41,509 nt of DNA, from positions 1 through 41,509 of the forward strand of contig FLMG01003944.1 in NCBI GenBank assembly GCA_900088475.1, written 5' to 3'. The first letter of the stretch is position 1. Each line of letters begins with the position of its first letter. The notes under the pieces are model-generated. The model was given only the letters and a program-made list of their open reading frames with translations. It was not told the origin of the DNA and ran no database searches. Shown one piece after another: positions 5,324 to 30,979 of this stretch. The DNA is from Hyphochytrium catenoides (taxonomy: Eukaryota; Protista; Hyphochytriomycota). The translations under genes were made by a program, and so were the position numbers.

Positions 5324-6694
5324 TTAGGCATTGGCCGTCAATGTAATGAACAGAGTTACCAGCATGAACGCATGAAGGCTGATACTACTTGATAGCCCGC
5401 CTCCAGAAGATGGTGGCGAGCCTTCCTTGTTGGTGGTGGCTCCTGCTTTATAGTCATAAACCGAGATTGTGACGTCGTCCACTGGTGGCCTCTCTTCCAC
5501 CCAAGACCCGTTCAGGAAGCAATATCTAAACTTCTGCTGGCGCGTACTACTACTGTACCAAACTCTAGGTCTGGCTAGTATCCCTTTGTACACCACCTCG
5601 TACAGATTGCCATCCNNNNNNNNNNNNNNNNNNNNNNNNNNNNNNNNNNNNNNNNNNNNNNNNNNNNNNNNNNACTCATACTTGGGGACGAAGCACTCTT
5701 CATAGCGGCCATCACAACCGGTACCATAGATAGCCCCTGGCGTGGCCCTACAGTCTGCTATACACTTATCATACAGCTGCCGTACATAGGAAGGCGAAAC
5801 GCCATAATTTTCTTCTCCAATCTCGTCACAGGTCTCCGGCTTCTCATTCTGTGCATCTGGAATAAGGCGTGTATAGGTTGCCTTGCAGCAGAAGCCGGCC
5901 TTCGCAGAGTACCTTTGCTCACTCAGATATGAAGACTCCCCTTCTTCATCGAAGTATAAGAGCTCTTCAAACCGACTTCCACTGTCGTCTAGAACTTTCA
6001 CAGCCCACATATTGGTCCATGACGGTTCACTCTCCGATGAGGACGGTTCTAAAAGCTGGACTTGGCCATCTCTGTAGGTAACCCACTGCACTCCTTTACC
6101 GCCTAACCCTAGCCATGCCTGATCTCCATTAGGGCATCGTCTGCATACGTGGTGCTGCTTCTTAGCACCATTCTGACCAGGGGGAAGATAAGTGCCCACT
6201 GCTTGTCCTTTGCTCTCAAGTGAAGCGCATTCCTCCTCAAACCTGCTCAGACTTTGATCACACTCGCTGATAGGAACAACACTGATGTCCGTGTAGAACC
6301 CTTCGTCGCCGGATTCAATGTCTTCCTTGGTAGGGCGGAACCAATCTTGGCACGCCTCCAATGGCTCTACTTTTGCTAGCACCACCGGATCACTCTTTAG
6401 TCCTCTCTTTGTGGAGTTCTTTGCGACGAGGTAGTCGGGATAGCGATGAAGAAGAGAGTAAGACTTCTCCCCCGTCATCATTTTTTTCGCTACGCTGTCC
6501 GCGGTAGTAAAGGAGGAGAGGGGATTATAGCCGACTTCGGTCGTCTTCCTGCTATCTTTTACTCCCACCCAAGAAGAAGAAGCACCGGCAGTCGCAGCTT
6601 GTGACTCGAGTAGCAAAGAAGAGAGCATCAAGGATGCAGCGGCAGCGCTAAGGCCTCCCAATAACATAGCATTTGTCCAGCTTTTCGTCCTCAT
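5324..6694 (-). CDS. Intronless secreted Cys-rich, putatively GPI-anchored surface protein of unknown family (about 456 aa)
   Basis: Long open frame. Start taken at MRTKSWTNAMLLGGLSAAAASLMLSSLLL (signal-like, matching the start of the paralogue at 1-766). About 14 Cys. C-terminus is a Ser/Gly-rich spacer (PPSSGGGLSSS) plus a hydrophobic end ISLHAFMLVTLFITLTANA with no cytosolic tail. N gap at 5616-5673. Confidence 0.85.
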   Translation of the reverse strand: MRTKSWTNAMLLGGLSAAAASLMLSSLLLESQAATAGASSSWVGVKDSRKTTEVGYNPLSSFTTADSVAKKMMTGEKSYSLLHRYPDYLVAKNSTKRGLKSDPVVLAKVEPLEACQDWFRPTKEDIESGDEGFYTDISVVPISECDQSLSRFEEECASLESKGQAVGTYLPPGQNGAKKQHHVCRRCPNGDQAWLGLGGKGVQWVTYRDGQVQLLEPSSSESEPSWTNMWAVKVLDDSGSRFEELLYFDEEGESSYLSEQRYSAKAGFCCKATYTRLIPDAQNEKPETCDEIGEENYGVSPSYVRQLYDKCIADCRATPGAIYGTGCDGRYEECFVPKYEXXXXXXXXXXXXXXXXXXXXDGNLYEVVYKGILARPRVWYSSSTRQQKFRYCFLNGSWVEERPPVDDVTISVYDYKAGATTNKEGSPPSSGGGLSSSISLHAFMLVTLFITLTANA

Positions 6695-7559
6695 CTTTCG
6701 TCTCTCTTCCTTGGTGGTCCTGCTCCGCTGCAGTAAGCAACAAGGCAAATGACGACCAGCAGCAATGACGACTAGCAAATTTAGATCGATTATGATAATG
6801 AGTAGTAGCGCAGGAGAGACGATTTTTAAAGTGAGGAGCATGCTCATCAGCAGCAGCAACTCAAGCATGCCTAGCTCATACAGATCATCACGCCCTGTTG
6901 TTTCCTCTACGCCACCCCACCACTTCACCTCCTGCTGCTTGTCTGCCATGTGGGGGGAGAAGACAGGATACATGTTGCTGGCTTCTTCTGGGTCTTTGTT
7001 CGACAATGACAAGAGATGGTACCCACGGTGATGGTCAGCTATGCTATTCAGACCAGGCAGCACGGTGCTCGTCACAGAGGAGAGAGGCACCAATATCCAC
7101 CACCTTCTCTCCCCGCCGCTCTTTCTCTCCCTGCTACTGGCTGTCGACCAGTCTTCTAGCCGTCACACCCGCCCGTTACTCCCTCAAGAGGTCTCCTACC
7201 GCCGTGATAAATTTATTGTAAGGATTCTATGTCACGCCCACTCATTCTTAGCCCCTTTACTTGGCCCTCCTCCCGTATAATAATAATATACTTTCCTTCA
7301 ACTTTTCAGCAGCGCAGGCTAGTTACCCCGCTCTATTACTATTGGACAAGCTCTAAACCCTGGTGACTCTATCGTGGAACAATGGGCATGCAACAACAAG
7401 GCCGGTGGTGGGCAGAGAGGTGGCCTAAAGGCCCACAAAGAACCACTTTATTTGGACGTCGATCTGTCCCACCTGAATTGAGGGAACAAGAGGAGGGTCT
7501 GTCTGTGCCTGTGGTGGTGGACATCCTTAATTAGCTTGTAGTTCACCACTTCTTTTTTG

Positions 7560-10245: not shown

Positions 10246-13158
10246 ATGAACGGAAGCACGATCGAGGCGCTGATGACGCCACCTCCATCGGTCCCTCCTC
10301 CAGCATCGACCACTACCATCAATGCCGTCCCTATAACACATCTTCGGGCCACAGAGGTGGCCGCCGCACTTCGAGAATGGTTGCCAAGGCTTACTGCGTC
10401 GACTCGGTTCCACGCAGTTGCACTGCTTGAAGATTTGAATGAACATATGGATCTTCCCCCCGTTCCCATGAGGGGCGGCATTGTGGTTAAGAAGCGCGGA
10501 AGGTATAACAAAGGCGATAAGGGTGCAGAAAGCGACTCACAAACTCGGCGCACAAGGAAACGAAAGCGCCCTGATCCTACAGCCCTTGCTACTGGTCCCT
10601 TAAGTGTTGAGTCCCTCCTCAGTGCGGCAACCGGCATGCCTTCGACGGACCCCAACTCTGTCTCAGTAATGTCTGGGGCATTGTTGGCCGCAGAGCTGGA
10701 AGGGGATGACCGCCTGCTAAAGGATGACCAGCAACTAAGACTCTCTCGGTCTAGACAGTGCGCTGTAGAAGGCTGTCAAAGAAGGTCGAGAGATACCGGG
10801 GGATTCTGTGCGGCCCATGGTAAGCTGCAGTCACTTGATGCAGCTGTGTTCCCTTAACTGAGCCTACAGGGGCTATACTTTCGAGGAACTTTAGCTTCTT
10901 CTTTCTCCCTTTGACTCTGCTCACTTCCATTTCTGTGGTCCTTCTCGTTGCGTTGTATTCTCTCGTAGCAGGTTTGTGACAGCTACTCTAGGCTAGTCTT
11001 TGTTTCCCTAGTTCTGAGCCGGACTGGATGCTTGTTATCTAACGTTACTCTTCGTCGCTGTGTACCTTCCTCCGAACACGATATCTGTCCACTTGGCTAC
11101 ACAGGCGGCGGAAAGCGATGTGCTCATGAAAACTGCGATCGCAGGGCTCTGAAATATGGATTCTGCTTGCGGCATGGTACCTTCTCAATCTTACCTCTTC
11201 CAAGACTCATAAGGCGGGTGTTAACTACCTTTTTTTCTAAATCTACCTCGTTTCTCGCTGTGTAACTTTAGGGGGAGGGCCACGATGCAGCGTCCTCGGC
11301 TGCGACAAGCCCGTGGACCGCACAAAGTTCTGCTATTCACATGGAGGAGGAAGACACTGCAAGCACGAACACTGTGAGGAGAGGATCCCATCTGGCGCTG
11401 GGGGCTTCTGCTTGATGCACGGTGGGAAGCTTTGCAGTGTAGATGGATGCGGAAGGTTGGCACACAGCCACGGAGTGTGCAAGATGCACAAGACGAAGCC
11501 TCACTGCATCCAAGAAGGATGCGATAGACCTGCGGTAGCTCGTTCGCTTTGTTATGTCCATGGGAAGGCGTACGCTTGCCAGCAGGAGGATTGTACCAAT
11601 CCCGCACTAAGAAAAGGAGGACGATGTAAGCTACACGGTGGAGGAAAGACTTGCTCTCTGAAGGAATGTGAAGGGACTCCTCTACGAAGCGGGACTTGCT
11701 TAGAGCATGGGGGAACGGATTTGTGCAAGATGGAGCGGTGCAGCAATATCTGCCTAACAGGTCAGTCTGCTTAGCGGGACAGAGAGGGACGACCAAAGCA
11801 GAATAGGAAGAAAGGATACCCGCCAGCAGCTTGTCAGAGGTTGCCAGCCTTTACTAAGCTAGGAGGCCAGTGAAAAATTGACGCTCTGAAGAGCTGGAGA
11901 TCAGTTTGGATTCAAGTGAGAGAGGAGATAGACTTGCTTTGAGGCGAGAAGACCGACTCAACAACCTCTTCACAGGTGGACTATGCAAGAGTCATGGAGG
12001 TGGCACAAGGAAGTGCAGCATAGAAGGTTGTACCAAGAATAAGCAGGGACCCACGGGGTTCTGCATTGCCCATGGTAATCCAAAAAGGAAGAGACAAGGG
12101 GGAGATCTTAGACGCCCGATAACAAACACTAGTCGTCGGCATAGCCGGGGCGCCAGTCTTACTTGCACCTGTTACGTATTGCAATATGGCCTGTTTGCAT
12201 TAAACTGCTTCTTGTTCCCGCTCTCTCTACCTGCAGGCGGGGGTTTGCGCTGTAGAATAACAGGTTGTGGGAAGCTGGCGGAGAGCGCAGGCCTCTGTGT
12301 CGGTCATGGTGGAAGAGGGAGAAGAGGGAAATGCAAGTATCCCCGTTGCGAGCAGTTTGCTGACAAGGTAGACGCAAGTTCTCTCCCTACTCAACGAGGT
12401 TTCTGCGTAGACCTTGATGTCTCACTCATTTCGCTATTCCTCCTTCCAAACGTGGTTCGCCTTCGTAATCGTTCCCCTAATGCCACATGCCATGAGTGCT
12501 TCCAGCGCGCTCCTCACCCATTTCTCTTTGTAGGGAGGACTTTGTCATCCACACGGTGGCGGTCGAAGGTGCAAGGCCCAAAACTGCGGCAAAGTTGCCC
12601 TCAAAGGTGGCTACTGCCATAGACACGGTGGAGGAAGAACCTGCGAGCATGAAGGGTGCGAGCATCAGGTGAGTGGGCCACTAAAAAATGGCTCTGGTGA
12701 CATCTGCCTGCCACCCCACTGTCATCTGAGTCTGGCTTTTTCTGACTCCCGTGTCCTTCCTTTCGTCTTCATCTCCTCCCTCGTCCTTTTCCTGTTAATG
12801 GCCGATTTGTCTTTGTTGTTGGGGATGTCAAGATAGCATAAGCATGTCTTAGATCTACATCTTAAAGTCGTCAATCTTGTCTTCTGTGGAGCCCTAGTTT
12901 GTCTTTTGAGCCTTGTCCTCATGGCCGATTCGCCTCTCTCGCACTGACTCAAAGATATGCGGTTGGACTTTCTTGCAGGTACCTCCCAAGGCCTCCTACT
13001 GTCTTCGGCATGGAGGTGGGCACCAATGCCTCTTCGACAGCTGTAGGGCACACACCTACAGTGGCGATTTCTGCAAGAAGCATAAGCCAGCGCTACCCCA
13101 CATCTCAGATGCAGACCTTGGCATGCTCCCTGATCCAATGCAGAGAGCTGAGGTCTAG
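10246..13158 (+). CDS. WRKY19-like CCCH zinc-finger repeat protein with 15 fingers (about 559 aa), putative nucleic-acid-binding regulator
   Basis: 7 exons with GT-AG introns and consistent phase: 10246-10819, 11105-11176, 11272-11760, 11976-12074, 12237-12367, 12534-12668, 12979-13158 (1680 nt). Repeats of C-x4-C-x9/11-C-x2-H(GGG). A basic NLS-like RRTRKRKRP lies in exon 1. Confidence 0.92.
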
Positions 13159-13992: not shown

Positions 13993-16900
13993 CTACACCC
14001 TGTTCTTCAGCTTAGGGTTGAGTTGTCCACATTCATCTCCCTTGGTATTCCTCTCATTCTGCTCTTGTTGCTCCCAGTATAATGCTGCGTCAATGATAGA
14101 GTTCAGGGCGGCCCTGAGGGAAGATAGAAGGCAGGTACAGTTAGCTTGCAAAAGATATAGAGAAGAACGACATCAAAGAACAGATCTCCAAGACGGATAA
14201 GGATAGTCGCAGAGGAGGAAGGGGAAAGCAGAGAATGTTCAAGACTCGACACCCACGAACGCACCCATAGCTCCCCATAATGTGCGCCCGTGGCTTCCTT
14301 GCCATCCTCTTCAGCAGAAAACGCTCGACATCAGATGGAGAGAGGAGAAATCTTCCATGTCCGGACGGATCAATGAGAACTTCCTCTCCAACGTGCTTGT
14401 AAGAGTCGGTCCAGCTCTTGATCCCCATAAATTTAGGGGAGCCAGTGATGAGGTCCCCATCACAAACCACACGATAAGAGGAGGGCACTAAGTGATTGTA
14501 GACTTGGGCGAAGGTGTGGTTACCTGCAGAGAGAGAGGGCACATAAAAGACGGAGTGACTTAGAACGACAGTAGGCAAGAAATTGGTTTACGCAGGCGTT
14601 AGAGGCAGGTATGACCGGACCACGGAGGAAAGGCGGACGGCCAGCAAGGTGGAGCTGTGAAGACACTGTTATCCATCACTGGGATGGGAAGCGCCTCAAG
14701 AGAAGGTCTTCCTTTATACAGAAAAGAAGACTATTGAGTCTGGAAAGACAATTGACGAGGGGACGAAGCCAAACGAGAGAGAGCCTAGGGATAAAATCTG
14801 TAAGGGAACGGAGTGAGGATAAATAGAGAGGGAGAAGAGATATTGAAGGGGAGAAAGGATCTGCACAAACCGATCCTGGGCGCCCCATAACTGTACATGA
14901 TAACGTCAGCAGGGACCTTGAGGGCCAAATCTAAAGCCATCAACGTGGCCATCGCGCCTCCCAAGCTATGCCCTACATGGAGATCAGGGTGGTAAGCTCA
15001 GCCATAAACCCCAGAAGCGCAGAGAGGGCGATAAGGAGGATAGGTATCCTCAAACGGACTAAAAGGCTTTTGCAGAGCAAGAGACAGAGAGAGAAAGAGA
15101 GAGCGGATTGGCAGAAGTGAAACGGTAGCTACAAAGAGACCAAGCAGACAGCAGGCCGCGGAGACAATCGGCAGAAGCATCAGTTTAGCGCTAGAGGGGA
15201 CACAATGGATTGAACGGCGTGAGAAGGGAAGTATAGATCGCTCGTAGATAATAAAGAGCTGTTTGAGCAGACGGAGAAATTTTCAAGTACTAGGCAGGAG
15301 GCGAGACCTGTAACATATATCTGCGCTTGCCCTTCCTCTGCTAACGTCCGCTGAACTATTGCGCGCACCTCATCCCTCATCGCAAGGGTTGCACTCCAGA
15401 AGCCCCGGTGACAGAAGGCCCTCTTAAAAGCTGCGGCCATAGCTGCAGACAGGGACCCTGGAAGAAAAGAAAGTGGAGGTGTCAGGGCACCTGTCCACTC
15501 TCTCTCTGTCTCTCTCTTATCTTCTCGTTCCCTCTTTTCCTCTCCTTGTCTCTTTTCCCCCAGTTTCCTTCTGCCTTCATTTTCCCTCTCCTCTCTGTGC
15601 CTGTCCTCTTACCTTCACCTCCATCTTTCCCTATATCTGTCTCCATCATGTCGACGTCCAAGTCCACAAGCGCATTAGCTCTATTGCATGTCCCTCGAAA
15701 CGCGACAATGATCCTCTTGGCATCTCTTACGACGATTGACCGCGTTCCGTACGCAGCGTGGTCGTATTCTCCCACCAGCTTGAGCTGCATGTGCGCTGAC
15801 AGAGATCGGATAAGGAAGGATAGCGATTTTGATTGGCCGGAGGATTCCAAAGAAGTGAAAGATAACCCGACACAGAGCAACGAGGGATGGAGAAGAAAGG
15901 AGGCAGGAAAGAACGCAAGAGTGGTTGACCGTTGACTACGTTATTCTCATTGATTGCACTAGGCGAGAGAGAGAGAGAGAGAGAGAAGAGTTCAGAAAGT
16001 CCAAAGAGCCAAATGAAAGAGACAAAGGGACATCGGCACTGCAGGAGCGGCATGGTTGACGAAAGGAGCAAGTCTAAGGATAAAAGCAAAAAAGCCAGAG
16101 AGGGAAGAAAGCAATAAGTAGCTTTTTGATGTTCCTTGACTATTATTCGAGTGCTCTGATTAAGTCTCTTACCTAGGGTGTGGATCAGAATGGGATAGTC
16201 GCTGTCAAAGTAGACGATGTAGCTGAGGTTGTACAGGATACATGCTGTCTCCACAGAGAATCTTAATGCACAGAGTGGAAGGAGGGAGTTAGAGGATCAA
16301 CGGAGAAGCCGACAGAGCCAAATCCTGTCATCTTCTGCAGTCTAACTCTCCCTTCTCTTCAGATGCCTTGCCATCCATTAGCTTCCCTTTAGTTTTCAGG
16401 ACTATCCTTGGTCATCGTCTTACTCTCCTCCTTGCTACATCAGGTCACACTATTGGTGTTCTGAAGAGGTATCTTATCCTATACGGTCGGTCCTATGTTG
16501 AAGCTCTCCTTGTCCGCCGGCTTCTCTCCATCTCTATGTCAAAGGTCGCGCTCTCTCTCCAATTTTGTCCTTCCGCTCCTTCTCTCAATAACTCTTTCTT
16601 TCTCACTCAACAACTCTTTTTTCTAACCTCTTCTTGTTCCTTCTGGATTGACCGCTAAGAAGCTGTGTAATTCCCGTTGGATCATTCACTTCCTGCACCG
16701 ATTCCGTCAGCCGCCGCGTGAGAATGACGTTTCTCACGGTTTTCTGCAGCCGACGAAGTGCAGAAGGCGACGAAGAGGAGAGAGACGCAGAGGTTTTTGC
16801 ACTTATCCTACAAAGAAAGTGGGAAAGAGTGAGAAACGCGCCGAGTTAGAAGATCGGCAAGGTAGGAGCCTGGAGTGAACGAGAAGTCGAAAGAAAGGCA

Positions 16901-19900
16901 AGCGCCCTTGAGGTTTGCCCAACAACCAGCGTGAGCCCCATTCGCGGAACGGGGAGTAAAAAAAAGCGTGTACGGAAGGAGAGTAATGACTACCTCACGG
17001 CAAAAGTGAGAGGCATGGAACTGAGTGAAGAACGAACCCGGTATCGAAAGAGAGTCAAGAAGAAACATTAAGGAAGAAGAGAAGCATGAAGACTCTTCCT
17101 TGATACTTACTCCTCCGCGTACGTGAAGCCGAAAACGTCTCTGATATGCTTAGTGGGCCTTCCCAGAGCGATGGACAATAGGATGAACTGCGCGACAAGC
17201 ATGAAGTTCTAGCAGGATAGAGACGCAGGAAGGGAGGAAAACTTTTAGACCAGCATTCTTCTAAAGACCTAACCGCACAGAAGAGAGAGACAAAGCCCCA
17301 AGAAGTGCGGAAAGAGGACAAAAACTTAGAACTTCAAAGAAGTAACAGGACTTAGCAGGCGGGAATGAGCGGACTAGAGAAGGAGAAGGGAGTGTGCTAA
17401 AGAGGGGCAGGAAGAGGGCATATTTCTCTCTTCCGAGGAACTTCCTTTCCGATCAGCGTCCATCTTTTTTCCTCGATTCTGTAGAGACATACCTTTGCCA
17501 GTACGAGATGGGCCATAGCTCCATTGCTAGGGGTTCTTGAGATAGTGAGGGGCTCCATACGGCTGATGGTTCGACGTAAAGAGAGGGACAGGACCAAGAA
17601 GAGAACGCAAAAGCACTAGAAGACACGAATAGAGGCAATGCAGAGCAAGTCAAAGTGAGAGCGCGGCCATAGGAAACGGGACAAGAAACTCAGGAACGGC
17701 ACAGGAGCTATGTCTGACAGAGATTACGCTTAGAAGAAAGAGACATGAAGTGAAGAGAAACATGCTAAAATGAAAGGCTGAGCACTGTCCAAAATGAACC
17801 TCAAGACTACGAAGTAGAGTCAGAGATATTGACAGTTCAAGAAGGTGGAAGCTTGTCGTGTCATATAAGAGCGGAAGACGAGGAGAGAGGAGAGAAAGCT
17901 GACAGAGGAAAAAAGAGAGAAGATAGTGAAAAACCGAATGAAATGCTAAGATGCTGCTGTCGCACCTGCAACATTAGGAGAGAGAAGCAGAGTTGCTGGA
18001 AGCGTGTCGTCACAAAGTTCATCTTGTGCAACTCCTTCTGTCCGCGGTAGAACAGGACACAAAGCCACACAGCCCAAATTAACAGACTCATCTGCGATAA
18101 GATGAGGAGAGAAAAGTCTACATATCGTATGAGAGTAAAGAGAGAAGAGTGGCGGTCAGCCGTCAGCCTGCAAAGTGGACGAAAGCGCAGATAGGCGATG
18201 TCTTTGCAATATCAAGGCCAGAGATTATGAGAAGAAGGGAGTGACAAGGGAGAGACAGCGTACCAACAGCATCTTCTCCGGGGTCTGAGTAGGTCGATCT
18301 GGCAGTGTAGTTGGACTTGAAGCAACCGTAAAGAAGGAGAATCGCGAGGGAGAGGATAAAGTAGAGCATTTTCCACAGATATGAAGGAAGGTCTGCTGCG
18401 AAGGAGACAGATTTGACCTTGCGGAGATTATCTACTAGAAGCAGTATGCCCTGAGGAAGAAGGATTGATCAGCTACATTGCTCGTTGGAAGAGGTGAAGA
18501 GAGAGAATGAAAGAGACGAGAAAAAACGTGGTAGGGAAGCGAAAGGCAGGGACAGACAAGTTGAAAGGCACAGAGGTGAGACACACGGTGAGGTATGGCA
18601 ACACAGATTAAAGTTATTTACCACTCTTATCGTGACCACGGCCAAGGAGTGCAGGATAATCGAGAGCAAGCGGAAGACAGGAGAAGAGCGTCCGGACCAG
18701 CTCTGAACCGTCAGTACAGGATCCGCCTCCAAAATAACTACAGAGAAAGAGCCGTAGGGCATGTGAGAGAGAGGGCCACAACGATAGATAGAGAAACGTA
18801 GGGAACACGTGGTTAGGTAAGGGGGAAGGAACATGTGTAAGTGCAAAGCTAAAGTTAGACAGAAGCAGCAATCTAAACGTTGGAGACAGAGGAGAAGCCA
18901 CTAAATAGATGGTCTGAACATTGAGGTAGATGAGAGAGAGAAAGAAGCAGCGTTTCCGTTCCGCTACCTGCGCCTAGTAGAACGGCAAGAATCTTCTGTT
19001 CTGTCACCCACTTTTTCCCATTCTCTTTTGACGACATGTGAAGGATGTAGAAGACAAAGTTGAAAAGAGCTACGCCGAGCAGTAGAGACGAGAGTGTGTG
19101 AAAAGCCTTCAGGTTGGTCTCAGCACCATAGTCCACCCTGCGCCGATAAGTAAGCATTAACAGCGGGAGAGGACCAGTTAGTAGAGGCCAAGAGAGTCAA
19201 AGCCCAGCATGGGGGAGCATATGTTTCCATATTGCTAGAGGAGTAATAGTGAGCAGAGCGATTAATTTTCGGTTCGTTAGGCGTTCGCGTTGCCCAGTTC
19301 CTTCCAGTTCTCTCTTTCTCTCTCTCTCTTTTTCTTCCCTTCCCTGTCTCCGTTTCTCTCCCTCCCCTCTGCTGCATCTTTATCCCAATCTTTCTTTTAC
19401 GCACTCATAGCTGCTTTTGCGGGCCTTTCTACTCACTCACATGAGGTTAGGCCCCACCCAGAAGGCTTCCGAAGGGTAGGAGACCTCAAAGGAAATGTTT
19501 GGAGCTCCAAAGTTTACCGAGGGTAGGCCATCCTCAGACACTAGCGGTAGAGACACCACATAGGACCGGGAGCAGGAGAGAACAGAGCAGATTGCCGAAG
19601 TGCAGAAGCAAGATACTGGCACCTGTCAGTGTTTTGGAGAGAGAAAAGCAACGAGACAGGGAAAGAGCAACAGATAGATGAATAGAAAGAGAGGACGCAG
19701 AATGGGGGAGAAGAAAGGGGTAAGTGGCAACAAGAGCTAGTGTCCGACCCAGAAGGACAAGTTTAGAACAGGAGCATAGTTCAATATGCTTACTTGAGAC
19801 ATTCAATGAACCCACAGAAAGAGAGAGAGCGACGGGATCAACAGGTCACGTAGAGCAGAAACAATAGAGACGTAGAAAAGATAGATGAGAGGCGAAGAGA

Positions 19901-21581
19901 GAGGGAGAGATAGAGAAAAGAAAGACCGACTCTCAGAGAGTGAGGAGAGATGGGAAGAGAAAGAGTGCGCATTGAGGGATAAGGCTCACCTGATATGTGA
20001 CAGACAACGGAGACTGATCCGCTAAGAACGCTTTCACTTTAAGCGGGATCCAGCCCGACCGCCTGCCAGTCCGAGATGATTCTGATAGATCTCTGACTAA
20101 GGAGGCGTTCAGCTGTGGGGAGTCTATAAGAAGTGTAAGGAAGGAAAAAGACGGCGATAGAGGCGGTATCTGGAGTCTCGAGACTTCTTCAGAAGCGTTG
20201 ATAGGATTGGCCAGACTGCAGTTTGTTGCCGCTGTAAGCCAAGAGAGCGGGAAAACGTGAGACAAAAGATGGAGGTTTCCAGCAGAAAGGAAAGGCGAGA
20301 GCCGTGGAGATGAACGGTGGAGGCAACACATTGAAAGCAGCTCTATAAAGGAAGGGATAAACATAAGGACGAGGACTGGAAACAGAAAAAAGCGACAAGA
20401 ACAAGGCAACCTCTGTACCAAGACTCCATGCTCATAAAGAACCAGGCCGCAGAGGGAAAGAGTAAAATAAATGGAGGCATGTACCAAAAGGAGAAGAAAG
20501 ATGAGATAACACCTGTCACATCCTGCACGGGGCATGCCCTCTTCAGATAAGTGGGACCTGCAACCCAGCTCACATATCCAGGCCAGAGAGAGAGGGAGAG
20601 AGAAAAGAGGAAGGAGAAAAGCAGCAAGAACATCATCATCTTCATTGACCGCCCTGACATTGTTTCAAGCCTGATACAAGCGCTGTGTCTGCTAGAGTGG
20701 TTTCCTCGAGGGCACTTATTAACCTACGGAGGGACAGTAGAAAAGACGAGCAAGAGAGACAGAGAACCAAGTAAGAAGGCACCATGGCGTCGCCGAGAAA
20801 GAGAACCCTCCACCACCGTCATTTGCTGTTCAGGAGAGAGAGTGAAAGGGGAAGAGAAGGGAAAGAGAGAGAGAAAGGAACCAGATACCATTCCTCTTCT
20901 CTCTTACCCTGCTCACATCTACCAGCTCAGTATGTAAGACAGGTTTGATGGTGGGTCCTAACACGCCACTGGACAGATAGAGCGCCCCTTCTTGGCGTCC
21001 CTTGGTAGCGGAAGAGACGGGAAGAGTCGGAGATACAGCAGCAGCGGCAGNNNNNNNNNNNNNNNNNNNNNNNNNNNNNNNNNNNNNNNNNNNNNNNNNN
21101 NNNNNNNNNNNATTCGTAGGTCTGCGCTGTCTCTATGGTGAAGGCGCCATAGCAGCCGTAGCAGAAGAGGATGCCTAATAGACTTAAGAGCACCACTAGC
21201 GCGATAGTGGTAAAGGCATAAGCAGAGCCTGGCGAGGGGCGAGATGAAAGAAAGAAAGAAAGAAAGAGAGAGACAGAGAAGAGAGACACAAGAAAGAGAG
21301 AGAGACAAGAAAGAGAGAGGGACAGAGAGACAGAGAAAGCCAGCAAACGGGGCAGAGAGATTAAGAGAAGATTAATCAGCAACAAAGAAGGGATCTCTTT
21401 CTAAGGAAGGAGGAGGGAAGAAGAACGAACCAGCGGAGAGAAGATATAGACTAACCCAAGATACGGCAGTCGTCGATGCCTAACTACACGTTTAAGTGCA
21501 TGGATTCTTACTAACACTGTCTCTCACTCTCCGTTTCTTGGCCAACGCTTCCTACTGTTCGTTCGTCTTTATCCTCTGCCC

Positions 21582-21615
<34 letters not shown>

Positions 21616-21890
21616 TCTCTTCCTCCTCCCCTCTCCCACACATACAAACACTTTTCTCTATTGCCCTTTCTCTCTCTCGTACCCTCTTTCGTTCGTACCT
21701 TCCAGCTGACAGATGCCATTGGCTCCGGCCTGACGGTTGCAAGCAAAGAAGACCTCATCAAAGGGACAGCGGCAGCCATTTGCGGTTGCACAGCCTTCTC
21801 CCTCGTTAAACGAAGAGAACCCGAAGAGAGCACTTGCATCTTTGCAGACAGGGAGCTCTCTATGTGATAGAGGGACGATGGAGGGCTTCA
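13993..21890 (-). CDS. Wntless/TMEM181-like 8-TM membrane protein fused to a C-terminal class-3 lipase (Lipase_3); 5' end unresolved
   Basis: 17 phase-consistent, stop-free exons (2523 nt, 840 aa): 20513-20723, 19990-20231, 19441-19622, 18968-19137, 18622-18737, 18264-18450, 17966-18117, 17493-17615, 17111-17208, 16999-17020, 16628-16743, 16173-16261, 15613-15795, 15308-15457, 14871-14972, 14265-14523, 13993-14113. Lipase motifs: IVAFRGT, HRGF, IYVTGHSLGGA, YGAPRIGN, DGDLIT, AHIMGSY. Further upstream exons are likely at 20923-21228 (spans an N gap) and 21699 to about 21890. Confidence 0.85.
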
Positions 21891-22363
21891 CAGTGTTCTG
21901 TGGCTCATCCAACGCAGAAGAGAAAGAGAAGAGACAGAAGAGAGAGAATGGAAGGAACAGGGGAAGAGGCTACGATAATAGAGAGAAGAGAAGGTCATCG
22001 GCGCCAAATAAATGAGACAAATAGAGAATCGAGGGACCAACAGAGGCAGAGATCGTGAGAAGGCATGAGAGAGAAGAGAGAGAGAGAGAGAGAGAAAGAG
22101 AGAGGGAGAAGGAGAATAGAAAGAGAGGAGGAGAGAAGGGGAGAGAGACCTGATGCAGACAAGCAAAACACAGGCAATGAGGTAGATGACTGGGTAACTC
22201 ATCACGAAAAGGAAAGCAAAGGAAGGCGAGGTTAGGTTAGGAAAAGAACGGGCAAGAGATGAGCAAGACAGTGAAAGAGAGAGGTAACCAAGAGGCAATA
22301 TGATAAAATGATGGGGAGGAGGAAAGAGGAGAGATTGCCGAAGGGACGGTCTGAGAGTTTACC

Positions 22364-23139
22364 TTGACGACTGACATCTGTCTCTTGGCGTTCGAAAGAG
22401 AGCGCTACAAGCTGGGAACACTCTTTTCTCTCTTTATAAAGCCTCTCAGTGTAGAGAGAGTGCCCCTGCTTCCCTATCCGAATCTCTCTCCTTCCTCATC
22501 TCTCATGCTCTCGTCCCCTTGTGTCAGCCAGTTGCTCCTGCTGTCCAGTTAGGGCTGACGCCGCGCGAGGAGAAACAGTTAAAATGTTCCCATAAATGTA
22601 TGTAAAAAAAGTAGTATTGGTGCAGGACTAGGGCTGTGACGACACGGGTAGGATGGAAGAGGAAAGGAAGGGGTAAGAGAGAGAGAGAGAAAGAAAGAAA
22701 GAAAAGAGAAGAGAAGAGAAGAGAGATGCTCAGGTAATCGGATCCCCCGAGTCCCTTAACACTGCAACCATCTCCTTGTGACCACCTGAGAGGAGCGCGG
22801 CACTGTGATAAGAAGAAGCACCCTTTTCTGCTCGTCCCAGGGACTCTGAAGCGGTCTGTGCTCCCGCCTCTCTCTCCCTTTTCTTGACAGGAGAGCTCAC
22901 AGAGAAAAGGAAGAGGCAGACCATCAAGCAGCGCGAGGAAGCGGACAGCTCTTGAGGAACATTGAGTTGTCAGTGTTATAGCAGGAAGAGGAGAGAGAAA
23001 ACAGAGAGGAGAGAGATGAAGAGCGAGAGAGAGGGAGAGAAATAGGCAGAGCAGGGCAGGAATAGAGACCGAGACGACGAGAGGCAGCGAGAAAGAGAGA
23101 GAATGAGCGGAAGATGAAGTGCACAGAGAGAGAGAGAGA

Positions 23140-23170
<31 letters not shown>

Positions 23171-23182
23171 CGAAAGAGAGCG

Positions 23183-23213
<31 letters not shown>

Positions 23214-24050
23214 GAGAGAGAGAAAGACGGAGAGAGGAGGGAGAGAGGGAGAGGAAGAGAGCAAGAGAGAGAGAGAGGGAGAGGAGTAAAATGTATAAGG
23301 GGAACAAATCTGTATCTCCAGTGCATGAACAGGGCGGTTTATGATCAGGTAGATCGGGACAGGCGTGGTGTTGTAGGCGGCTAAGGATCGAGTAGGTTTG
23401 TAATCTCTCAAGTAAACCTCCCCTTGAAAGAGCTTCAACACCTCTCCCCAGCTTATTCTGCTACCTAGAGAATAGCTGAGGAGAGGTATCTTTCTACTCT
23501 TTACGTAGCAGCGTTTCTCATGGGTACCGTAATTCTACTGGGAGAAGGTCTCTGCCATCCCTGAAAGGACACAAAGCAGCCAACATGAAGACCCAAGATC
23601 ACTCGACAGATCAATAAGATTGCCAACCAAATGATTATTCTCTGATAATCACAGCCAACCCAAAAACGGCCTTGATGATGCGAAGCCTCCACTTCCCCAC
23701 TCTTTTCATTAGAGTTTCTGCATCTTCATATCATCGGCTTTTGGAGCTCTGCCATCACGGTGACGCTGAGTTTATCGCCATCTGCTTCCCTCATCAGGGC
23801 ATAGAAGATGATTGAAAAGAGGTAGAATGGGATAGATAACAACTGATACTCACAGAGAGGTTGTAGGTAGAGAGTGGGTAGCTGGCGCCTGCGGTGGAAC
23901 AATGTGTGGAATCGTCTTTCGAGATAGACCACTACGGTTGCAGGTGTGGGCACGATGAAGGTGGAGAAGAATGAGTATATGGACTGAAGACTATTAGGAG
24001 AAATGTTAGTACCACCACCGCCAATAGGCAGCGATCACCACAGGCGAGTT
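22364..24050 (-). pseudogene. Exon-like segments with in-frame stops: either the broken 5' part of the lipase-fusion gene or a separate decayed gene
   Basis: A signal-like CLLAVVVLTFLLIVFSP is followed by LQP*WSISKDDSTHC..YNLS|gtgagt (TAG at 23932-23934). The next exon reads GWQRPSPSRITVPMRNAAT*KSRK.. (TAA at 23501-23503). CT-rich tracts on the minus strand look intronic. No in-frame ATG was found. Confidence 0.3.
23120..23285. repeat. (GA)n/(CT)n microsatellite tract (intronic)
   Basis: Nearly uninterrupted gagagaga run. It produces the spurious SL- and ER-repeat ORFs in the track. Confidence 0.9.
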
Positions 24051-24118: not shown

Positions 24119-27100
24119 ATGTTTTCGACAAAACTCCTCGAGACAGCTGTTCAATGTCCTTCAGAGGCCAAGGAGCTCTTCCTAGCAAATCGGGAGCTAG
24201 GGGATGACAGTATGACTCAGATCCCATGGGCCAGCTTCTCTCAGTTGAGAAGCCTTAACCTTGCAGTAAGCTTTACTTTTAGTCCCTATAGATCTAGGCT
24301 AGTCCCTATAGATCTAGGCTCAAGCCTACGTCCTCCTCTCTCTTAATCTTACTTCCCAACTCGAGTTACATTTCAATGCTCTTATCTGATGTCTTCTCTC
24401 ACCGTCTCCGTATGTGGATGTCCATCTTTGCACCTTCAACCTAACTACCGCCGCTCTATCGCTGGTGGTTCCTTTGCAGTTCAATAAGCTGACTCGCATG
24501 CCAGAATTAGAGAAGGTATTTCTTACTCCCGTTGCGCTGCTTGGTCTTTACCTCTGTCTTCCTTTTGTACTCCTGCCTTACCGCCCTTCTGAATCCACAC
24601 TACGTTACCTTATTTAGTCCTATACAGGCCAGGTCTTTCTAACTTCTCTCTTCGGTTTTTCTCTCTCCAACTGTCCTCAGCCTTGTCTTACTCTTTCGCT
24701 GCCAACGTGTCCGCCTTCTTTCTCTCTCGGCCCTCTCCTTTGAGCCTCCCTGCCTTACTCACCTCTCTTTCCATTTCTTTGTTTGTAAGTGCTGGGCACT
24801 AGAATATTTAAACATCGCTCACAATAAGATCAGCGATCTAGACGTTGTGCTCTCACTCCCAAGTCTGAGAGTGCTAAAATGCTCCAACAACAAGGTGAGC
24901 AGTCTGAAGCCCATGGAGAGACTGAGCGGCTCCAAGATTGAGCAACTCTGGCTCAACAGCAATAAAATAGAGGCAGACCAGCTTCGACACCTGAAGGTGA
25001 GTTGTGGATCTCTCAGCAAGGAATGAGTAGGGCCTCCGTATGGCTATAGAATAGCGTCCGGGAAAGAGAGGTGGGTAAGAAGGTATAAGCTATGCCATGT
25101 CTCTAGTGATAGGAGGGTAAAGGTCTATAGGAACGGGAAGTGGGCGGCAAATATATGTGAGGACGAAAGCCTGCATTTTAAAAAGTTAAAGAAGAGCTGC
25201 TTTTGGAAAGACTGGCGAAGGAAGCGGGTTGAAGAGGTCAGCAGAAGGCAATGCGGGACTGAATGGGGAGCACGATGACGCTGACATTCTTTTCTTCACC
25301 TGTAGCACCTACCCTCTCTTCGCACCCTCATGGTCTCCCCTAATCCGTGCTCCGACGCACCTAACTTCAGGTAGGGCCATGCAGGTATTCCTGCGATTGA
25401 TTTTGAGTTAGACGAACATCGGCAGAAAGGGAGAGAATATGAGGGCAGGAGAGTGAGAAGAGGTGGGGCGATCGATGAGTGAGGATGCAAACAAGCACTC
25501 ATCTGCGCATTTATAGTCATTTAGTCCTAGAAGCTGCTCCACGACTGTCTGTGGTAGATGGAGAGCCATTAGACACCTTTCAAGAAAAATACGCTGCCAA
25601 GGCATCTTCAGTTACCCCTTCTGCCTCGAGCAAGGAGGAGGTTCAGCCTAGAGACTCTGTAGACAGCGTATCCCTTGCAGAAGAGACCTACCTCAGACCT
25701 TCTTCGTCTCGTTCCTCATCTTCCAATCAGAAGGAGAGGGTCTTGCTTTCGCCATCCACCCCTCACGATGTCCACTCTCCTAGGACGTCAGGTACTCTTC
25801 AATACTTCAAATAGCATGGGATCTTCCCCTTGCATCTTACTCTCTTGCCAATTGTCGTTCGGTGACTCTGTCCTTAGTTTCTCGCTTAGATCTCGTCTAT
25901 TCCTCAGTCTTTTAGTAGTCATTCACCTTTATCCTCTACTCACTTTTCTCCCTTATTTACCTCTGGGCTGTCGTCAATTGTGGTTCATATGTGGACTTCA
26001 GCTGTGCTTCAGAAGACAGGCCTTGCTCTTTTGGAACCCATGAAGAACAGCCGAAAGCAGTCAAAGTCCACGGTTAGGAAGCCTTCAGCAGGTCAAGAGA
26101 TTCCATTGAAGCTACGCTCTGAAGGTGCGCGTAGAAGATAGACGAGAACGGAGCTCACTCTTACTCTTACTCTTTTCTCGGAAGTTGGCTCCTTAATAGT
26201 AAGCTGTGAGCTGCCTTAACCATCGTCCGACTAAGCCTTGTTCTGCTGGAGAATTTCTCCTCTCCCTGTGCGCTTTGGCATGCCTGTATCGTCCCTCGGT
26301 TGGACTCTGCGCATGCCTCTTTGTCTTGCCTAAGTACCTCAGGAATGCTCTTTGTCGTATCTTTCAATTCTATGGAAATCCTTAGCTTATATTGCCTGAA
26401 TAGCTATCTTCTTCAGCACTTTAGCTCCCCTATCATCTGGTCAGTTCCCGCCTCCTATTACTGATCTCTGGTGCCTCCTAATGGGTATGCTTGATTGACG
26501 TTGCTGCCTTTACCTCCCTAGAATTGGACAAGCTGTCAATATTGGATGCCGTAAGCGCCCTTAGCTCTCTAAACCTAAGCAAAGCAACAGTATCTAGCAC
26601 GACTAAGAGGCAGCTCACTGCAAAAAGCAAAGGAAAGAAGAACGACAGAGGGACCAAAGCAAGCAGTGACAGACCCGTGAGCAACAATAACAATGAGGAA
26701 AGCAGAGACGAACAGGATGACGGTAACCTCGTGCAGGAAAGAAAGGACAGACGAGAACGGGCACCACAGGACGAAGGATATGGGGCTCTCCCCTCCGGGC
26801 CTGTAGAGGACGTACTTGTCTCAAGCGAAGTCGAACCCAATCATCAAGAGTTCGGAGCGAGTTTCTTGGAGAATAACTCCTGGAAAGGAACAACCAAACA
26901 GCCTGAGGTTGACAATGAAGAAGAGAAAGCGAAAGAGAGCCAAGCAGGGGAAGTCCAAGTCCAGTATGGGAAGAACGGAGGCGTGGGACTCCTCATCAGA
27001 TCCGATGGCTCTGCGTATGCACGGTGGCCAAACGGGACTCTTGCAGTCTCGGTAGACAGAGAGGGCGAGAGAGAGGGAAGAGAAGGGTGGAGGCTCTTTG

Positions 27101-27687
27101 CGAGACAGAAGAATGGCGCGATAGCTGTAACATTTGACAGCACAAACACCGGCTCTGCTAACTATGGAGGAGGGAATCTTCTCTACTCCTCCGCGAGCAG
27201 TGGATGTGGCTTTATTCTAGACTCAGAGGGCGATGTCTATCGGAACTGGGATGAATCAGGGAACATCATTAACGGAAGCGGAGAACGCTGCAGTCTAGGG
27301 GAAGACGGAAGTGAGTACTTTGAGGCCGTCATCTCAGATGAACTGGGAATCCGACTGTCTTTGGTCCCTGCAAGGAAAGGAGAGAGAGAAGAGAACCAAG
27401 GAGGAACAAGAGCAAAAGAGGCTGATGGGGCTCGGCTACGGCTGGAGTTATTCTTTGCATGCCGGAACATTCACTGCGTCTTGCGATGCGGCAGAAACAC
27501 GTCTCATGGGATCAAAGAGTTTGAAGATCTGCATCACAGTGGTAGGACAAAGCTCTTCACGGACTATCTACAGAGGGAAACAGGTGAAGATGGAGACAGC
27601 AAGAGAAAGGAAGATGCGAAGGACGATGCTCTCACGCACGATGAGCTGAGGAACATGATCCGTGAAGCTACACGTCTCTTAGGGTGA
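24119..27687 (+). CDS. Leucine-rich repeat (SDS22-like + LRRcap) protein with C-terminal FAM194/ERICH6-like domain (about 672 aa)
   Basis: 7 phase-consistent exons: 24119-24265, 24480-24515, 24790-24996, 25306-25370, 25517-25791, 26002-26124, 26522-27687 (2019 nt). LRRs: LRSLNLAFNKL, LEYLNIAHNKI, LRVLKCSNNKV, IEQLWLNSNKI. Cap: NPC..PRLSVVDG. C-terminal DGSAYARWPNGTLAV..AVTFDS..GSANYGGG..GFILDSEG..W resembles the FAM194 pattern as I recall it. Confidence 0.85.
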
Positions 27688-27857: not shown

Positions 27858-30800
27858 CTAAGGCCTCACCAGGCTATTACGACGGTTAAGAAGGCTTACT
27901 AATCCGCTCATGGTGGGAGGTGAGGCCAACGCAGATAAAAAGAAGGCACTGAGGAGCGCAGCTGCGCTCTCCTCTCTGGCCCAGAAGAGCTCATCTAATA
28001 AGACCTTTCATAGGTATGGCAAGCACCACTCCTTATCTCGGCTGACGATGGTCATATATAAAAAAAAAAATATAGGGCAAGTTGACATCGAAAGGAGTGG
28101 ACTCATGACGATGGAAGAGAGAGGGTGGTGAAAGAAAGAGAGAGGATAGAAGTGCAAAAAAGGAAAACACAGAGGAAGGGAAAGAGAAAGAGACGAAGGC
28201 CAAGATCAGATAGGTAGGCAATGTTGCTGCACAGGGGATGCTGACATGCTGATTGCTGAGAGAAGCGAAGACGTTGGGAGAAGTAGTTCCTAGTAGTTCT
28301 AGGTAGTCCATTTTTAATAAAAAAAAGGCTCCTGCTTTGTTCTGCCTGCCCTTCCCTTCATAGGGGAGACCGAGAGCTTCTGGCTTCGTGAAGATGTAGA
28401 TCCATGAGCGGGGACAACGGAATAGATTAGCCGATGGGATGGGAGAGAGAGAGAGAGACAGACGGAGAGAAAAAAGAAGAGAAAGAAGACGGAGAGAGAG
28501 GGATATATATATATATATATCTAGAGAGAGAAGGAAGGAAAGAGAGAGAAAAGAGAAACACTGAGAGGAAGGGAGGAAAGGAAGAGAGACATAGGGATAA
28601 TTGGAGAGACACAGAGAGGGAAAAAGAGAGAAAAACAAAGAGAAAGAGACAGTGAGAGAGAGAGAGAGACAGCCAGAGAGAGAGAGACGGAGAGACAGAG
28701 AGAGAATGAGAGAGAAAAAGGAACAGAAAAGATGAGAATCGATAGGAATCAACCCTCTCTTCCTCTGATGAGGGTTCCGATGCGACGGGGATGGACTGGT
28801 AATTCAAATGCTTATAGAGGATCTTTTACTGTCGCGGCGCCGCAGCACTTGGCTCGCAAGCTCTCACAATCAAGAGTGTCGTCAATTGTCTCTTTCTTTC
28901 CGTCACATAAACATAGATCTAGTTCTGATTCTACTTTCTCTCTTCTTCTATCTCTGTGTCTCCGTTTCTCCCTGGCTCCCCTGGCTCCCTTGGATCTACT
29001 GTTGTCTGCCCCTGGTCTGTCCTCCCTCATCAGGCAACAAGCCCTTCCATTCTTCAACAAAGCCATGGCCAAAACTTGGTCATGACGCAGCGATGAGTAA
29101 GCAGAAGGAAGAGAGGCTGGGCCACAAGAAGAAAGCTCCAGACCCCTTGAACCATCATAAAACTAATAAGTGGATGGGAAGAAAGAATGGAGTTACGGAG
29201 GAGAGAGCACTCCGTAAACCTTGCTGCTGCTGATGAGCCTCAGCTGAAGTTGAAGCGACGAGCAAGGTAGGTTGCTTGTGGGCCTATCACTCATGCTGCC
29301 AGTAGTATCCCATGGATGATAAGGTAAGAAGAGATGCTCTCTTATTATGAGGCAGAAAGTGAGAGCCATGGCAGGGGTCGTGGAGAGAAGGAATGAGGGA
29401 AAGGAACCGAGAAAGAGACAAGCCTATTCTACGTTGTCTCTCAGCCCTTTCCATCCCTCCCGAGAGCCCACTACTAGGAACCTTGGGAGAGCTGATCTAT
29501 GAAGAGCCCAGAAGGATGATGGATTTTGTGCTTGCGCAGCCCTGCTGTTCCCTGACCCGGTCCTTATGGGTGGAAGAGAGAAGACAAAGAGAGGGGATGG
29601 GCCCTACAACTAGAAATCGTAGGCTGGAGAAAGAGGAGAAGAGGTGTAGAGGAGAGGTGTAGAGAAGCAGGGTACCGCGGGCAGCGAGAGGACCAATGTT
29701 CTTGATGACTCGTAACCTCCGCCTGCGGGTTTGCATGCGATTCAGTCTCTCAATACTTAGTCATAAACCTTCTTAGACGATAGGCGGACCCCGAACACGG
29801 AGCACTGGGATAGCGCTGACCTTGGAGAGGAGTATCTTATGTTGAAGAGGACGATGATGAGGAGTGAGAAATGAGAGAGAAGACCACCTGCCTGAAAGCA
29901 GGTCGAGCTTGAGAAGAGAGATGGACTGGGTTAGGGGCATAGCGTGTCAGAATTGGGTCTGATTCCTGCGGCAGAAACGTAGAGAATTGAACCCACTCTG
30001 TTGTCCCAGCAGAGTGAACGGGAAAGAAACAAGGCAGGCAAAGCAGACTGAGGAGGAAAGAAGGAGGAGTATAGAGGGGAAAGAGAAGGAAAGAAAGAGG
30101 GAGACAGAAGAGAGAGAAAGAAAGCAAAGAACAAGAGCTGGTCTACAGGTGGTCGAGGGTCGCGAACCTGCTGCTGCATGGTTGTTTTCATTGTTTGAGC
30201 AGACCCGGCTTCCTTCCAGGCATAAAATGCGTAGAGAAGAAAGGATCTTGTGATCGACAGCTCCCCACCACCTTTCTTCTAGAAAAGAAGAGACAGAGAG
30301 GTCAGAAAGCCACTTTCTTAGCCCACGAAGAGTCTTATTCCTCAGAAAGAGAAAGGCGGACCCTGCGGTGATTTTCTAGATGGATGGCTGGTTGTCTCTC
30401 TCTCTGGCGGCAGTTGTCCTGCCAAAAAAGCGAACAGAAAGGCTTTCGGCTGCTGCACTTCAGCCGATCCTAACCTTTGTGATAGACTTTCGTCCTTAGT
30501 CCTGGCAATAGTTCTACCTCCAAAAGAGTGGTCTCTCGCTTGACTGAGATCCTTTTCCTCTCTGGCTCTCCTTCTCAGCCCTCTCGGTCTCTCTCTCTCC
30601 CTTCTTTTCGTTCTTTCTTTCTCTTTCTCTCCCTTCTGACTTTGTCGTCATCCCTTTATCTTCTCAGTCACTCTTCTCTCGTCCTCCTCGTCTTTCTCAT
30701 CATCTGCGGACCTGTTGGGTCTTCTGTCACGAAGAGGCTTTTTGTCCTTGTTGGCTGTCTGTCACGGTACTGACCACACCAGACGCCGCAGAGAAAGAGA

Positions 30801-30937
30801 CGGGCACTCTGATACTAATAATGCAAGAAGACCAAAAACAAGGCAGAGACGAACTGAAGGACCACCAGAGAGAAGATGGGAAGGATAGAGGGAGGGAGAC
30901 AGAAAGAGAGAGAGAGCGAAAGAGAAAGAGAGAGAGA

Positions 30938-30979
<42 letters not shown>

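Follow-up and report, generated by a model that had tools for sequence, protein, structure and literature searches.

A probable gene joining a Wntless/TMEM181-type membrane module to a class-3 lipase in Hyphochytrium catenoides

To our knowledge, Wnt ligands are specific to animals and other organisms are without Wnt; Wntless (WLS) has been studied solely for its carriage of Wnt, and TMEM181 has received next to no study. The window analysed here, a stretch of 41,509 nucleotides from contig FLMG01003944.1 of Hyphochytrium catenoides, raises the question of whether a membrane domain of this kind and a class-3 lipase belong to a single protein, and what such a protein would do. Judged from its sequence, the locus is most likely one multi-exon gene encoding a Wntless/TMEM181-type eight-helix membrane module followed by an apparently active class-3 lipase.

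Gene model and exon boundaries

The gene lies on the minus strand at 20723-13993, where GT-AG exons splice into one frame without stops. The encoded order comprises TM1, a Cys-containing luminal part, and seven further hydrophobic helices, followed by a complete Lipase_3 domain, whose catalytic residues are the Ser in GHSLGG, the Asp in DGD, and the His in HIMGSY. An earlier note on this DNA had given the same limits, and they are correct: the acceptor AG occupies 20725-20724, the frame is open from 20723, and the stop codon lies at 13995-13993, with the first ATG at 20660. The order of parts in that note is reproduced by the stop-free spliced frame with its triad, and its in-frame fusion and both domain calls are upheld, at least 39 relatives carrying the TM and lipase parts together. 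The exons are listed in Table 1.

Table 1. Exons of the fusion gene in 5' to 3' order of the minus strand (a slash marks a splice boundary)
Feature	Position	Strand	Remarks
Candidate upstream start exon	21699..21839	-	ATG 21839; donor AAG/GTACGA after 21699; speculative
First recognisable exon	20513..20723	-	TM1 (MMMFLLLFSF...) and first luminal Cys; ATG 20660
Luminal-domain exon	19990..20231	-	NxS/T sites, PPLSP; acceptor TTACAG/, donor CAG/GTGAGC
Luminal-domain exon	19441..19622	-	CxCx5C cluster on the family's conserved Cys positions
TM2 and W..EQK motif exon	18968..19137	-	Weak PF06664 match; family HMM positions 15-70
TM3 (ILEADP) and TM4 exon	18622..18737	-	Family profile alignment
LLLVDN, SYLWK, TM5, YSDP exon	18264..18450	-	Donor uncertain; alternative exon end 18317
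TM6 and L..M.F.TTRFQQL exon	17966..18117	-	Family HMM 24.4 bits; acceptor uncertain, alternative 18167
TM7 exon, model A	17493..17615	-	Strong acceptor and donor (AAG/GTATGT)
TM8 exon, model A	17274..17350	-	FCPL on family FLPP motif; uncertain
First lipase exon	16173..16261	-	FSVETACILYNLSYIVY fits family FC.E.A..L...S..AY; starts at an acceptor, without its own ATG
Lipase exon	15613..15795	-	VAFRGT strand, oxyanion region
Lipase exon	15308..15457	-	HRGFW ... YVT; acceptor possibly 15430
Nucleophile-elbow lipase exon	14871..14972	-	GHSLGG (catalytic Ser); Pfam Lipase_3 match
Lipase exon with catalytic Asp and His	14265..14523	-	DGDLITGSP, AHIMGSY
Last exon and stop codon	13993..14113	-	H....Y...L spacing as in the family

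The exon number and the protein length are not fixed. Four GT-AG solutions, all without stops, contain 15-17 exons and 765-829 aa counted from ATG 20660: a 15-exon form of 766 aa, a 765-aa variant that differs at exons 6-7, a 17-exon form of 801 aa, and a 15-exon form close to the earlier reading with 829 aa (850 aa counted from 20723). The stop-free GT-AG frame described earlier stands, and none of the four solutions reproduces its exact figures of 17 exons and 840 aa. A look-up of sequencing runs for this genome listed none of RNA.

The less certain parts of the model are the 5' end, the junction from 18450 to 18117, and the TM7 and TM8 exons together with the linker (17966-16261). At the 5' end, the residues IRLET immediately before ATG 20660 fit the family motif IxxET, and the true translation start may therefore lie in an exon upstream of 20723. 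The candidate start exon in Table 1 bears a weak likeness to the family N-terminus, which is itself poorly conserved, and an assembly gap (N run 21051-21111) falls inside its putative intron. Within the luminal domain, a candidate exon at 19830-19741 was discarded, because 19990 splices directly to 19622. Around TM7, the alternative resembling the earlier reading (17688-17493) is in a different frame; with the model A exon the TM-domain profile extends to position 295 rather than 240 and gains about 6 bits. The corresponding alternative to the TM8 exon spans 17268-17107. The lipase exons are unambiguous, with junctions reading ...YVT/GHSLGG and ...GAPRI/GNHTFA.

Membrane and lipase domains

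In model A, a Kyte-Doolittle scan finds eight hydrophobic segments, arranged as 1 + 7 with approximately 175 residues from TM1 to TM2, which fits the GOST (WLS type) layout. The model resembling the earlier reading contains seven. Pfam was run on single exons, of which the piece 18969-19160 matches PF06664 weakly (13.8 bits, E 0.036; gathering score 28.3 bits), the remaining exons giving no match to that family. The family HMM matches four TM exons in collinear order. A TM profile built from eight relatives only, each above the PF06664 threshold (40-62 bits), gives 79-82 bits for the spliced TM region, whereas 2000 shuffled versions reach at most 7.1 bits and the sequence in reverse -5.1; the match is therefore not attributable to chance. 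Along this profile, KWVTEQKILAVLLGAVILEADP aligns with the consensus vlteqkWlvvylvavllyQnP, which carries the TM2-TM3 motif W..EQ.W...NP, and LHKMNFVTTRFQQL aligns with LkkLpYlsTRyrQL, the post-TM6 motif L...Y..TR..QL. The TMEM181/Wntless motifs named in the earlier note are thus genuine family motifs on profile consensus columns. The same profile also matches the TMEM181-type protein P0168, which itself reaches 136 bits on PF06664.

The comparison with WLS structures proposed in the earlier note was run on the relative P0074, and its outcome agrees with the expectation. The AlphaFold model of P0074 consists of TM1, a beta domain (strands 71-242), and seven helices, and the full-length AF2 model has a pTM of 0.79. 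In Foldseek the best matches are human WLS (E 8e-10). The whole WLS chain (WLS/Evi/MIG-14; 7KC4, 7DRT) is matched by the N-terminal 560 residues of P0074, with a VIA Z of 22.5 and an rmsd of 4.1 Å over 367 residues, compared with a Z of about 17 for TMEM87A and at most 15 for GPCRs. The family TM profile gave no match at E<=1 among PDB sequences; therefore, the WLS link is one of fold only. Pfam GOLD models, including TMEM181_GOLD, found no match in the luminal parts of nine relatives, and an atlas feature search with one TM exon returned no usable match. Taken through the relatives, which supply the links to PF06664 and to the WLS fold transitively, sequence and predicted structure support placing the membrane part in the Wntless/TMEM181 branch of the GOST family.

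In the case of the lipase, the nucleophile-elbow exon (14972-14871, tested as 14872-14970) matches Pfam Lipase_3 (PF01764) at 32 bits (E 1.3e-7; gathering score 22 bits), and two further lipase exons give weak collinear matches as single exons. Lipase_3 is present in all 45 long relatives, in which the D and H are invariant and GHSxGG is nearly so; the GHSLGG, DGDLITGSP, and AHIMGSY of the fusion sit on the S, D, and H columns of these sequences, and the enzyme appears to be active. Among solved structures, the lipase domain of the relative P0059 comes closest to Rhizopus/Rhizomucor lipases, feruloyl esterase A, and mono-/diacylglycerol lipases.

Several known proteins share parts of this design. 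WLS, the carrier of lipidated Wnt, is without an enzyme domain, whereas the fusion family has a lipase. TMEM181 (GPR181) belongs to the same Pfam family, and the motif W..EQ.W....L....NP is common to the fusion and the TMEM181-type protein P0168. TMEM181 itself is without the lipase, and its one known role is that of a host factor for E. coli CDT (PMC9711517). GPCR-bigrams (GPCR-PIPK and others), in which an N-terminal 7TM precedes a catalytic domain at the C-terminus, occur in stramenopiles and other protists (PMC12716839). Unlike these, the fusion has a 7TM of GOST/WLS type with an additional TM1 and luminal domain, and a GPCR-bigram with a lipase partner was not found in the literature searched. 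The sn-1 diacylglycerol lipases DAGL-alpha/beta place a cytosolic Lipase_3 catalytic domain behind a multi-pass membrane anchor. This anchor has four N-terminal helices and neither a luminal domain nor a WLS-like fold, whereas the fusion has eight helices and a WLS-like fold, and its lipase has no specific similarity to DAGL. The fusion thus falls outside the DAG lipase alpha/beta group, which serves as a design analogue only.

Relatives and evolutionary context

The family census consisted of a single phmmer search, and among the 150 nearest lipase relatives listed, 39 contain the same TM domain, in the order TM then lipase. Searches under a word filter, starting from the TM region of P0074 and from the N-terminal family alignment, gave P0074 itself and one TMEM181-like protein. 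These fusion relatives come from Saprolegniales oomycetes, Chlorarachnion, Ancoracysta, Corallochytrium, and the ichthyosporean Chromosphaera, and they include transcript-derived sequences from MMETSP and TSA. Saprolegniales proteins such as SPRG_08473 of Saprolegnia parasitica and the alpha/beta-hydrolase P0059 of Thraustotheca clavata have the identical order of TM1, luminal domain, 7TM, and class-3 lipase. Most oomycete members fall below the PF06664 threshold, while some relatives exceed the Pfam thresholds for PF06664 and Lipase_3 together; one of these is the protein of Chromosphaera perkinsii, a unicellular organism related to animals.

The Saprolegniales "Fungal lipase-type domain-containing proteins" and the protist relatives share motifs and the catalytic triad with the H. 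catenoides fusion. Compared with them, the latter is shorter, and its identity across the alignment does not exceed 28%, with 40-49% in the best lipase exon. In the tree it is sister to an oomycete-rich clade (SH-aLRT 96) on a very long branch. Since 39 listed relatives have the same design, the H. catenoides fusion is, on sequence grounds, a divergent member of a catalogued, uncharacterised family. The novelty suggested in the earlier note accordingly fails at the level of databases, which hold dozens of such proteins, a PF06664 + Lipase_3 pair already precomputed in Pfam annotation, and an IMG automatic product name, "Wnt-binding factor.../Lipase (class 3)", for one relative. At the level of publications, no paper describing a Wntless/TMEM181-lipase fusion was found in the literature searched, and a term search of a 2026 class-3 lipase survey found no description of it.

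The family shows that the WLS/TMEM181 membrane module is widespread in protists and regularly joined to an apparently active lipase. The H. catenoides locus adds a very divergent member, and its chief value is as a pointer to this family, which offers a testable lead both on the role of the WLS/TMEM181 fold before Wnt and on a novel kind of membrane-anchored lipase. Tentatively, and with less than even confidence, the Wntless/TMEM181 branch of GOST proteins may be ancient in eukaryotes and typically lipase-fused outside animals, namely in oomycetes, Rhizaria, Ancoracysta, Corallochytrium, and the ichthyosporean Chromosphaera. If so, animal WLS and TMEM181 would descend from, or be sister to, a membrane protein coupled to a lipid hydrolase, and the lipid-binding cavity in which WLS carries the acyl chain of Wnt would have originated as part of a membrane-lipid-processing machine. 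In a survey of animal relatives, both WLS and TMEM181 were undetected in choanoflagellates (PMC12716839).

Proposed topology and competing explanations

The locus is probably best explained as a gene for a class-3 lipase that is an integral membrane protein, its membrane part belonging to the Wntless/TMEM181 branch of the GOST family. In this protein, a short N-terminus in the cytosol would lead into TM1, followed by a beta-rich domain in the lumen, some 175 residues long and bearing conserved cysteines, the 7TM bundle, a linker, and a Ser-Asp-His lipase. The lipase would lie on the cytosolic side, because the topology of WLS and the even number of helices place it there. By analogy with its lipase family, which includes fungal TAG/MAG/DAG lipases and DAG lipase, we infer that it would hydrolyse an acyl ester in a membrane glycerolipid, acting on the cytosolic leaflet of a secretory, endosomal, or plasma membrane. 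The enzyme would owe its localisation or trafficking itinerary, and possibly its regulation, to the GOST module.

A sub-variant of this explanation, which we regard as rather unlikely, is a receptor-type enzyme in which the luminal or extracellular domain and the 7TM would respond to a ligand or lipid by switching on the cytosolic lipase. An extracellular domain, a 7TM, and a C-terminal enzyme are likewise combined in oomycete GPCR-bigrams (GPCR-PIPK) or bacterial 7TMR-DISM proteins; 7TMR-DISM sensor enzymes are among the nearest models in the atlas shape search, and the pTM of the full-length model suggests that bundle and lipase are fixed relative to each other. However, signalling has been shown for no GOST protein (PMC12716839).

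The version put forward in the earlier note, in which an acyl chain or lipid bound in a WLS-like cavity would go straight to the fused hydrolase, is improbable. The cavities of WLS and TMEM87A do hold phospholipid, with a lateral slot open to the bilayer (PMC9711517). In WLS, however, the opening of the cavity and its slot is on the luminal-leaflet side, whereas a C-terminal domain placed after TM8 would be cytosolic, and no path across the membrane is indicated. Direct hand-over is not the simplest reading, because the cytosolic lipase would stand opposite the luminal-leaflet opening of the cavity.

Very improbable is an in silico artefact created from two co-oriented neighbours, a WLS-like gene ending near 17100 and a lipase gene starting at 17000-16300. 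The TM-to-lipase join (17966-16261) holds the least certain junctions: about 1 kb, which would be the longest intron in the gene, separates the last TM exon from the first lipase exon, and the linker exons proposed there, 16807-16738 and 16662-16628, are of low information. These mini-exons, supplied by the spliced aligner, raise the profile score but were not relied on, because they seemingly serve to evade the deletion penalty. Against two genes, the first lipase exon begins exactly at its acceptor, where the family homology also begins, no ATG occurs in the open frame upstream of it, every frame combination joins without a stop, and fusion is the rule in the 39 listed relatives, the transcript-derived ones included.

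Least probable is an unexpressed or decaying copy of the fusion family, which would suit the long branch and low identity of the H. catenoides sequence but not its conserved exons, which are free of in-frame stops and frameshifts, or its catalytic triad and TM motifs, which are intact.

Gene layout and the lipase half

The gene at 20723-13993 is eukaryotic and intron-rich, with CT-rich introns, and holds no long ORF but ordered stop-free pieces of clear protein character along the minus strand. Most junctions were set by reading frames and splice signals, followed by our own profile-to-DNA spliced alignment against an HMM from 33 relatives. The predicted model A contains 15 exons and 766 aa, counted from the ATG at 20660. 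Its three variants are likewise GT-AG and stop-free; hence, the stop-free spliced frame joining the transmembrane (TM) half to the lipase half is robust. The fused frame proposed in the earlier note is thereby retained, but the exon number and length given there (17 and 840 aa) are not fixed, since four splice solutions are free of stops. A look-up of sequencing runs lists none from RNA for this genome. Model A is preferred for its 1 + 7 hydrophobic segments (seven in the reader-like variant), its stronger splice sites, and the TM profile, which extends into TM8 and scores approximately 6 bits above the alternative. Judged from the sequence, the fusion is very probably a single gene.

Predicted exons of model A and its variants
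Feature	Position	Strand	Remark
Exon 1	20660-20513	minus	
Exon 2	20231-19990	minus	
Exon 3	19622-19441	minus	
Exon 4	19137-18968	minus	
Exon 5	18737-18622	minus	
Exon 6	18450-18264	minus	
Exon 7	18117-17966	minus	
Exon 8	17615-17493	minus	
Exon 9	17350-17274	minus	
Exon 10	16261-16173	minus	
Exon 11	15795-15613	minus	
Exon 12	15457-15308	minus	
Exon 13	14972-14871	minus	
Exon 14	14523-14265	minus	
Exon 15	14113-13993	minus	
Variant 1			different junctions at exons 6-7
Variant 2			linker with two additional mini-exons
Variant 3	17688-17493 + 17268-17107		reader-like

The frame upstream of the ATG is open from an excellent acceptor at 20723, and the upstream residues IRLET match the family motif IxxET; hence, the true start codon may sit in an upstream exon. 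A speculative candidate, 21839-21699, is separated from exon 1 by an assembly gap. Four N runs of approximately 60 bases each represent such gaps (3524-3590, 5616-5673, 21051-21111, and 32083-32142), and the run at 21051-21111, just upstream of the gene, makes the first exon harder to find.

The 3' half has the unmistakable sequence of a class-3 lipase. Exon 13 by itself reaches 32 bits with the Pfam Lipase_3 profile, whose cutoff is 22, the two adjoining exons give weak, collinear matches, and splicing recreates the canonical strings YVT|GHSLGG and GAPRI|GNHTFA. The complete Ser/Asp/His triad read in the earlier note is borne out, with the Ser of GHSLGG, the second Asp of DGDLITGSP, and the His of AHIMGSY at alignment positions that are invariant or nearly so among 45 relatives. 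The lipase domain of P0059, one of the relatives, is nearest to fungal TAG and mono-/diacylglycerol lipases.

The membrane half and its fold

The exon with TM2 and KWVTEQK matches Pfam PF06664 (WLS-like_TM) below threshold (E 0.036). A phmmer search of 1.84 billion representative proteins, started from the best lipase exon, yielded no close orthologue among the 150 matches listed (at most 49% identity); many of these are proteins of 800–1500 aa whose C-terminal part is the lipase. Among the matches of at least 600 aa, Lipase_3 is present in 45 of 45 and PF06664, at E ≤ 0.01, in 17 of 45. An iterated profile seeded with the PF06664 region of P0074, another of the relatives, identifies a TM domain upstream of the lipase common to 39 of the 150 listed matches and matches four window exons in the correct order. 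To avoid profile drift, an HMM was built from eight members above Pfam's own PF06664 cutoff (40–62 bits, near full model length). It scores 79–82 bits on the spliced TM region of the window, compared with at most 7.1 bits for 2000 shuffles and −5.1 for the reversed sequence, and the motifs it aligns are the TMEM181/Wntless motifs named in the earlier note. It also matches P0168, a TMEM181-type protein without a lipase (PF06664 136 bits, TMEM181_GOLD weak). The family TM profile matches no PDB sequence; hence, the link to Wntless (WLS) runs via Pfam and the fold.

The protein folded was not the window protein but P0074 (residues 1–560, 33-sequence alignment). In the model (pLDDT 70, pTM 0.73), a single N-terminal helix precedes a beta-rich domain, which is followed by seven long helices. 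In Foldseek against the PDB, the top four entries are human WLS (E about 1e-9), followed by TMEM87A (1e-4) and then GPCRs. With VIA-align, WLS is again the best match (Z 22.5, rmsd 4.1 Å over 367 residues, model 33–522 on WLS 4–496), ahead of TMEM87A (Z ~17, 7TM only) and GPCRs (Z ≤ 15). This fold of the relative, together with the HMM score, supports the Wntless/TMEM181 identity first proposed for the TM half. In the full-length P0074 model, pTM is 0.79 and the lipase domain is predicted with confidence.

Family record and possible function

Several fusion paralogues per genus occur in Saprolegnia, Achlya, Thraustotheca, and Aphanomyces, named solely "hypothetical" or "Fungal lipase-type domain-containing protein". 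Further members exist in Chlorarachnion reptans (MMETSP transcript), Ancoracysta twista (transcript assembly), Corallochytrium limacisporum, and the ichthyosporean Chromosphaera perkinsii, the last above the Pfam threshold for both domains. The A. twista protein (P0030, 1059 aa) elaborates this design further: three TM2 domains (PF05154) precede its WLS-like TM and lipase. A quick ML tree tentatively places the window protein, at most 28% identical to its relatives, on a long branch as sister to the oomycete-rich clade (SH-aLRT 96).

The novelty suggested in the earlier note holds in part. Databases already record both domains: one IMG protein is auto-named [quoted passage not shown], the precomputed Pfam annotation of P0074 contains both families, and in an ESM-Atlas cluster of 53 proteins, mostly from oomycetes, Lipase_3 occurs in 100% of members and PF06664 in 23%. 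No published description of the TM–lipase architecture was found in literature searches on WLS/TMEM181 and lipase, including GOST-family papers, in which WLS and TMEM181 appear without an enzyme partner (PMC9711517, PMC12716839). The observation is real and its domain interpretation correct, and the locus is a divergent added member of a family catalogued in databases, uncharacterised, and apparently unpublished. What makes it interesting is the family's bearing on the history of the Wntless/TMEM181 fold before animals; in choanoflagellates, neither WLS nor TMEM181 was detected, according to PMC12716839.

By analogy with WLS topology and from the even helix count, we infer that the lipase would face the cytosol. 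On the most economical reading, the protein would be a membrane-resident glycerolipid hydrolase, with the GOST module setting its location and perhaps its activity; according to PMC12716839, GOST proteins known so far cycle via Golgi and endosomes. Direct hand-over of lipid from a WLS-type cavity to the fused lipase, as the earlier note envisaged, is less likely, since such a cavity has its opening on the side of the luminal leaflet (PMC9711517).

Other features of the window

Two plus-strand regions, 10246-12622 and 33280-34584, hold several ORFs with repeated WRKY19-type zinc fingers (Pfam PF24906, E down to 1.5e-16) of the pattern C..EGC...G.C..HGGG.RC. A 589-aa ORF at 5324-7093 (minus) includes an N run and a hydrophobic stretch towards either end, and a 473-aa part of it, run against Pfam, has no match. 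The 398-aa ORF at 26491-27687 (plus) gives a weak, sub-threshold FAM194 match (15.9 bits). Long CT/TC-rich low-complexity stretches on the minus strand (~19900-23400 and 28000-31200), translating as SLSLSL, constitute most of the minus-strand intron and intergenic sequence, resulting in strong GC/AT skew.
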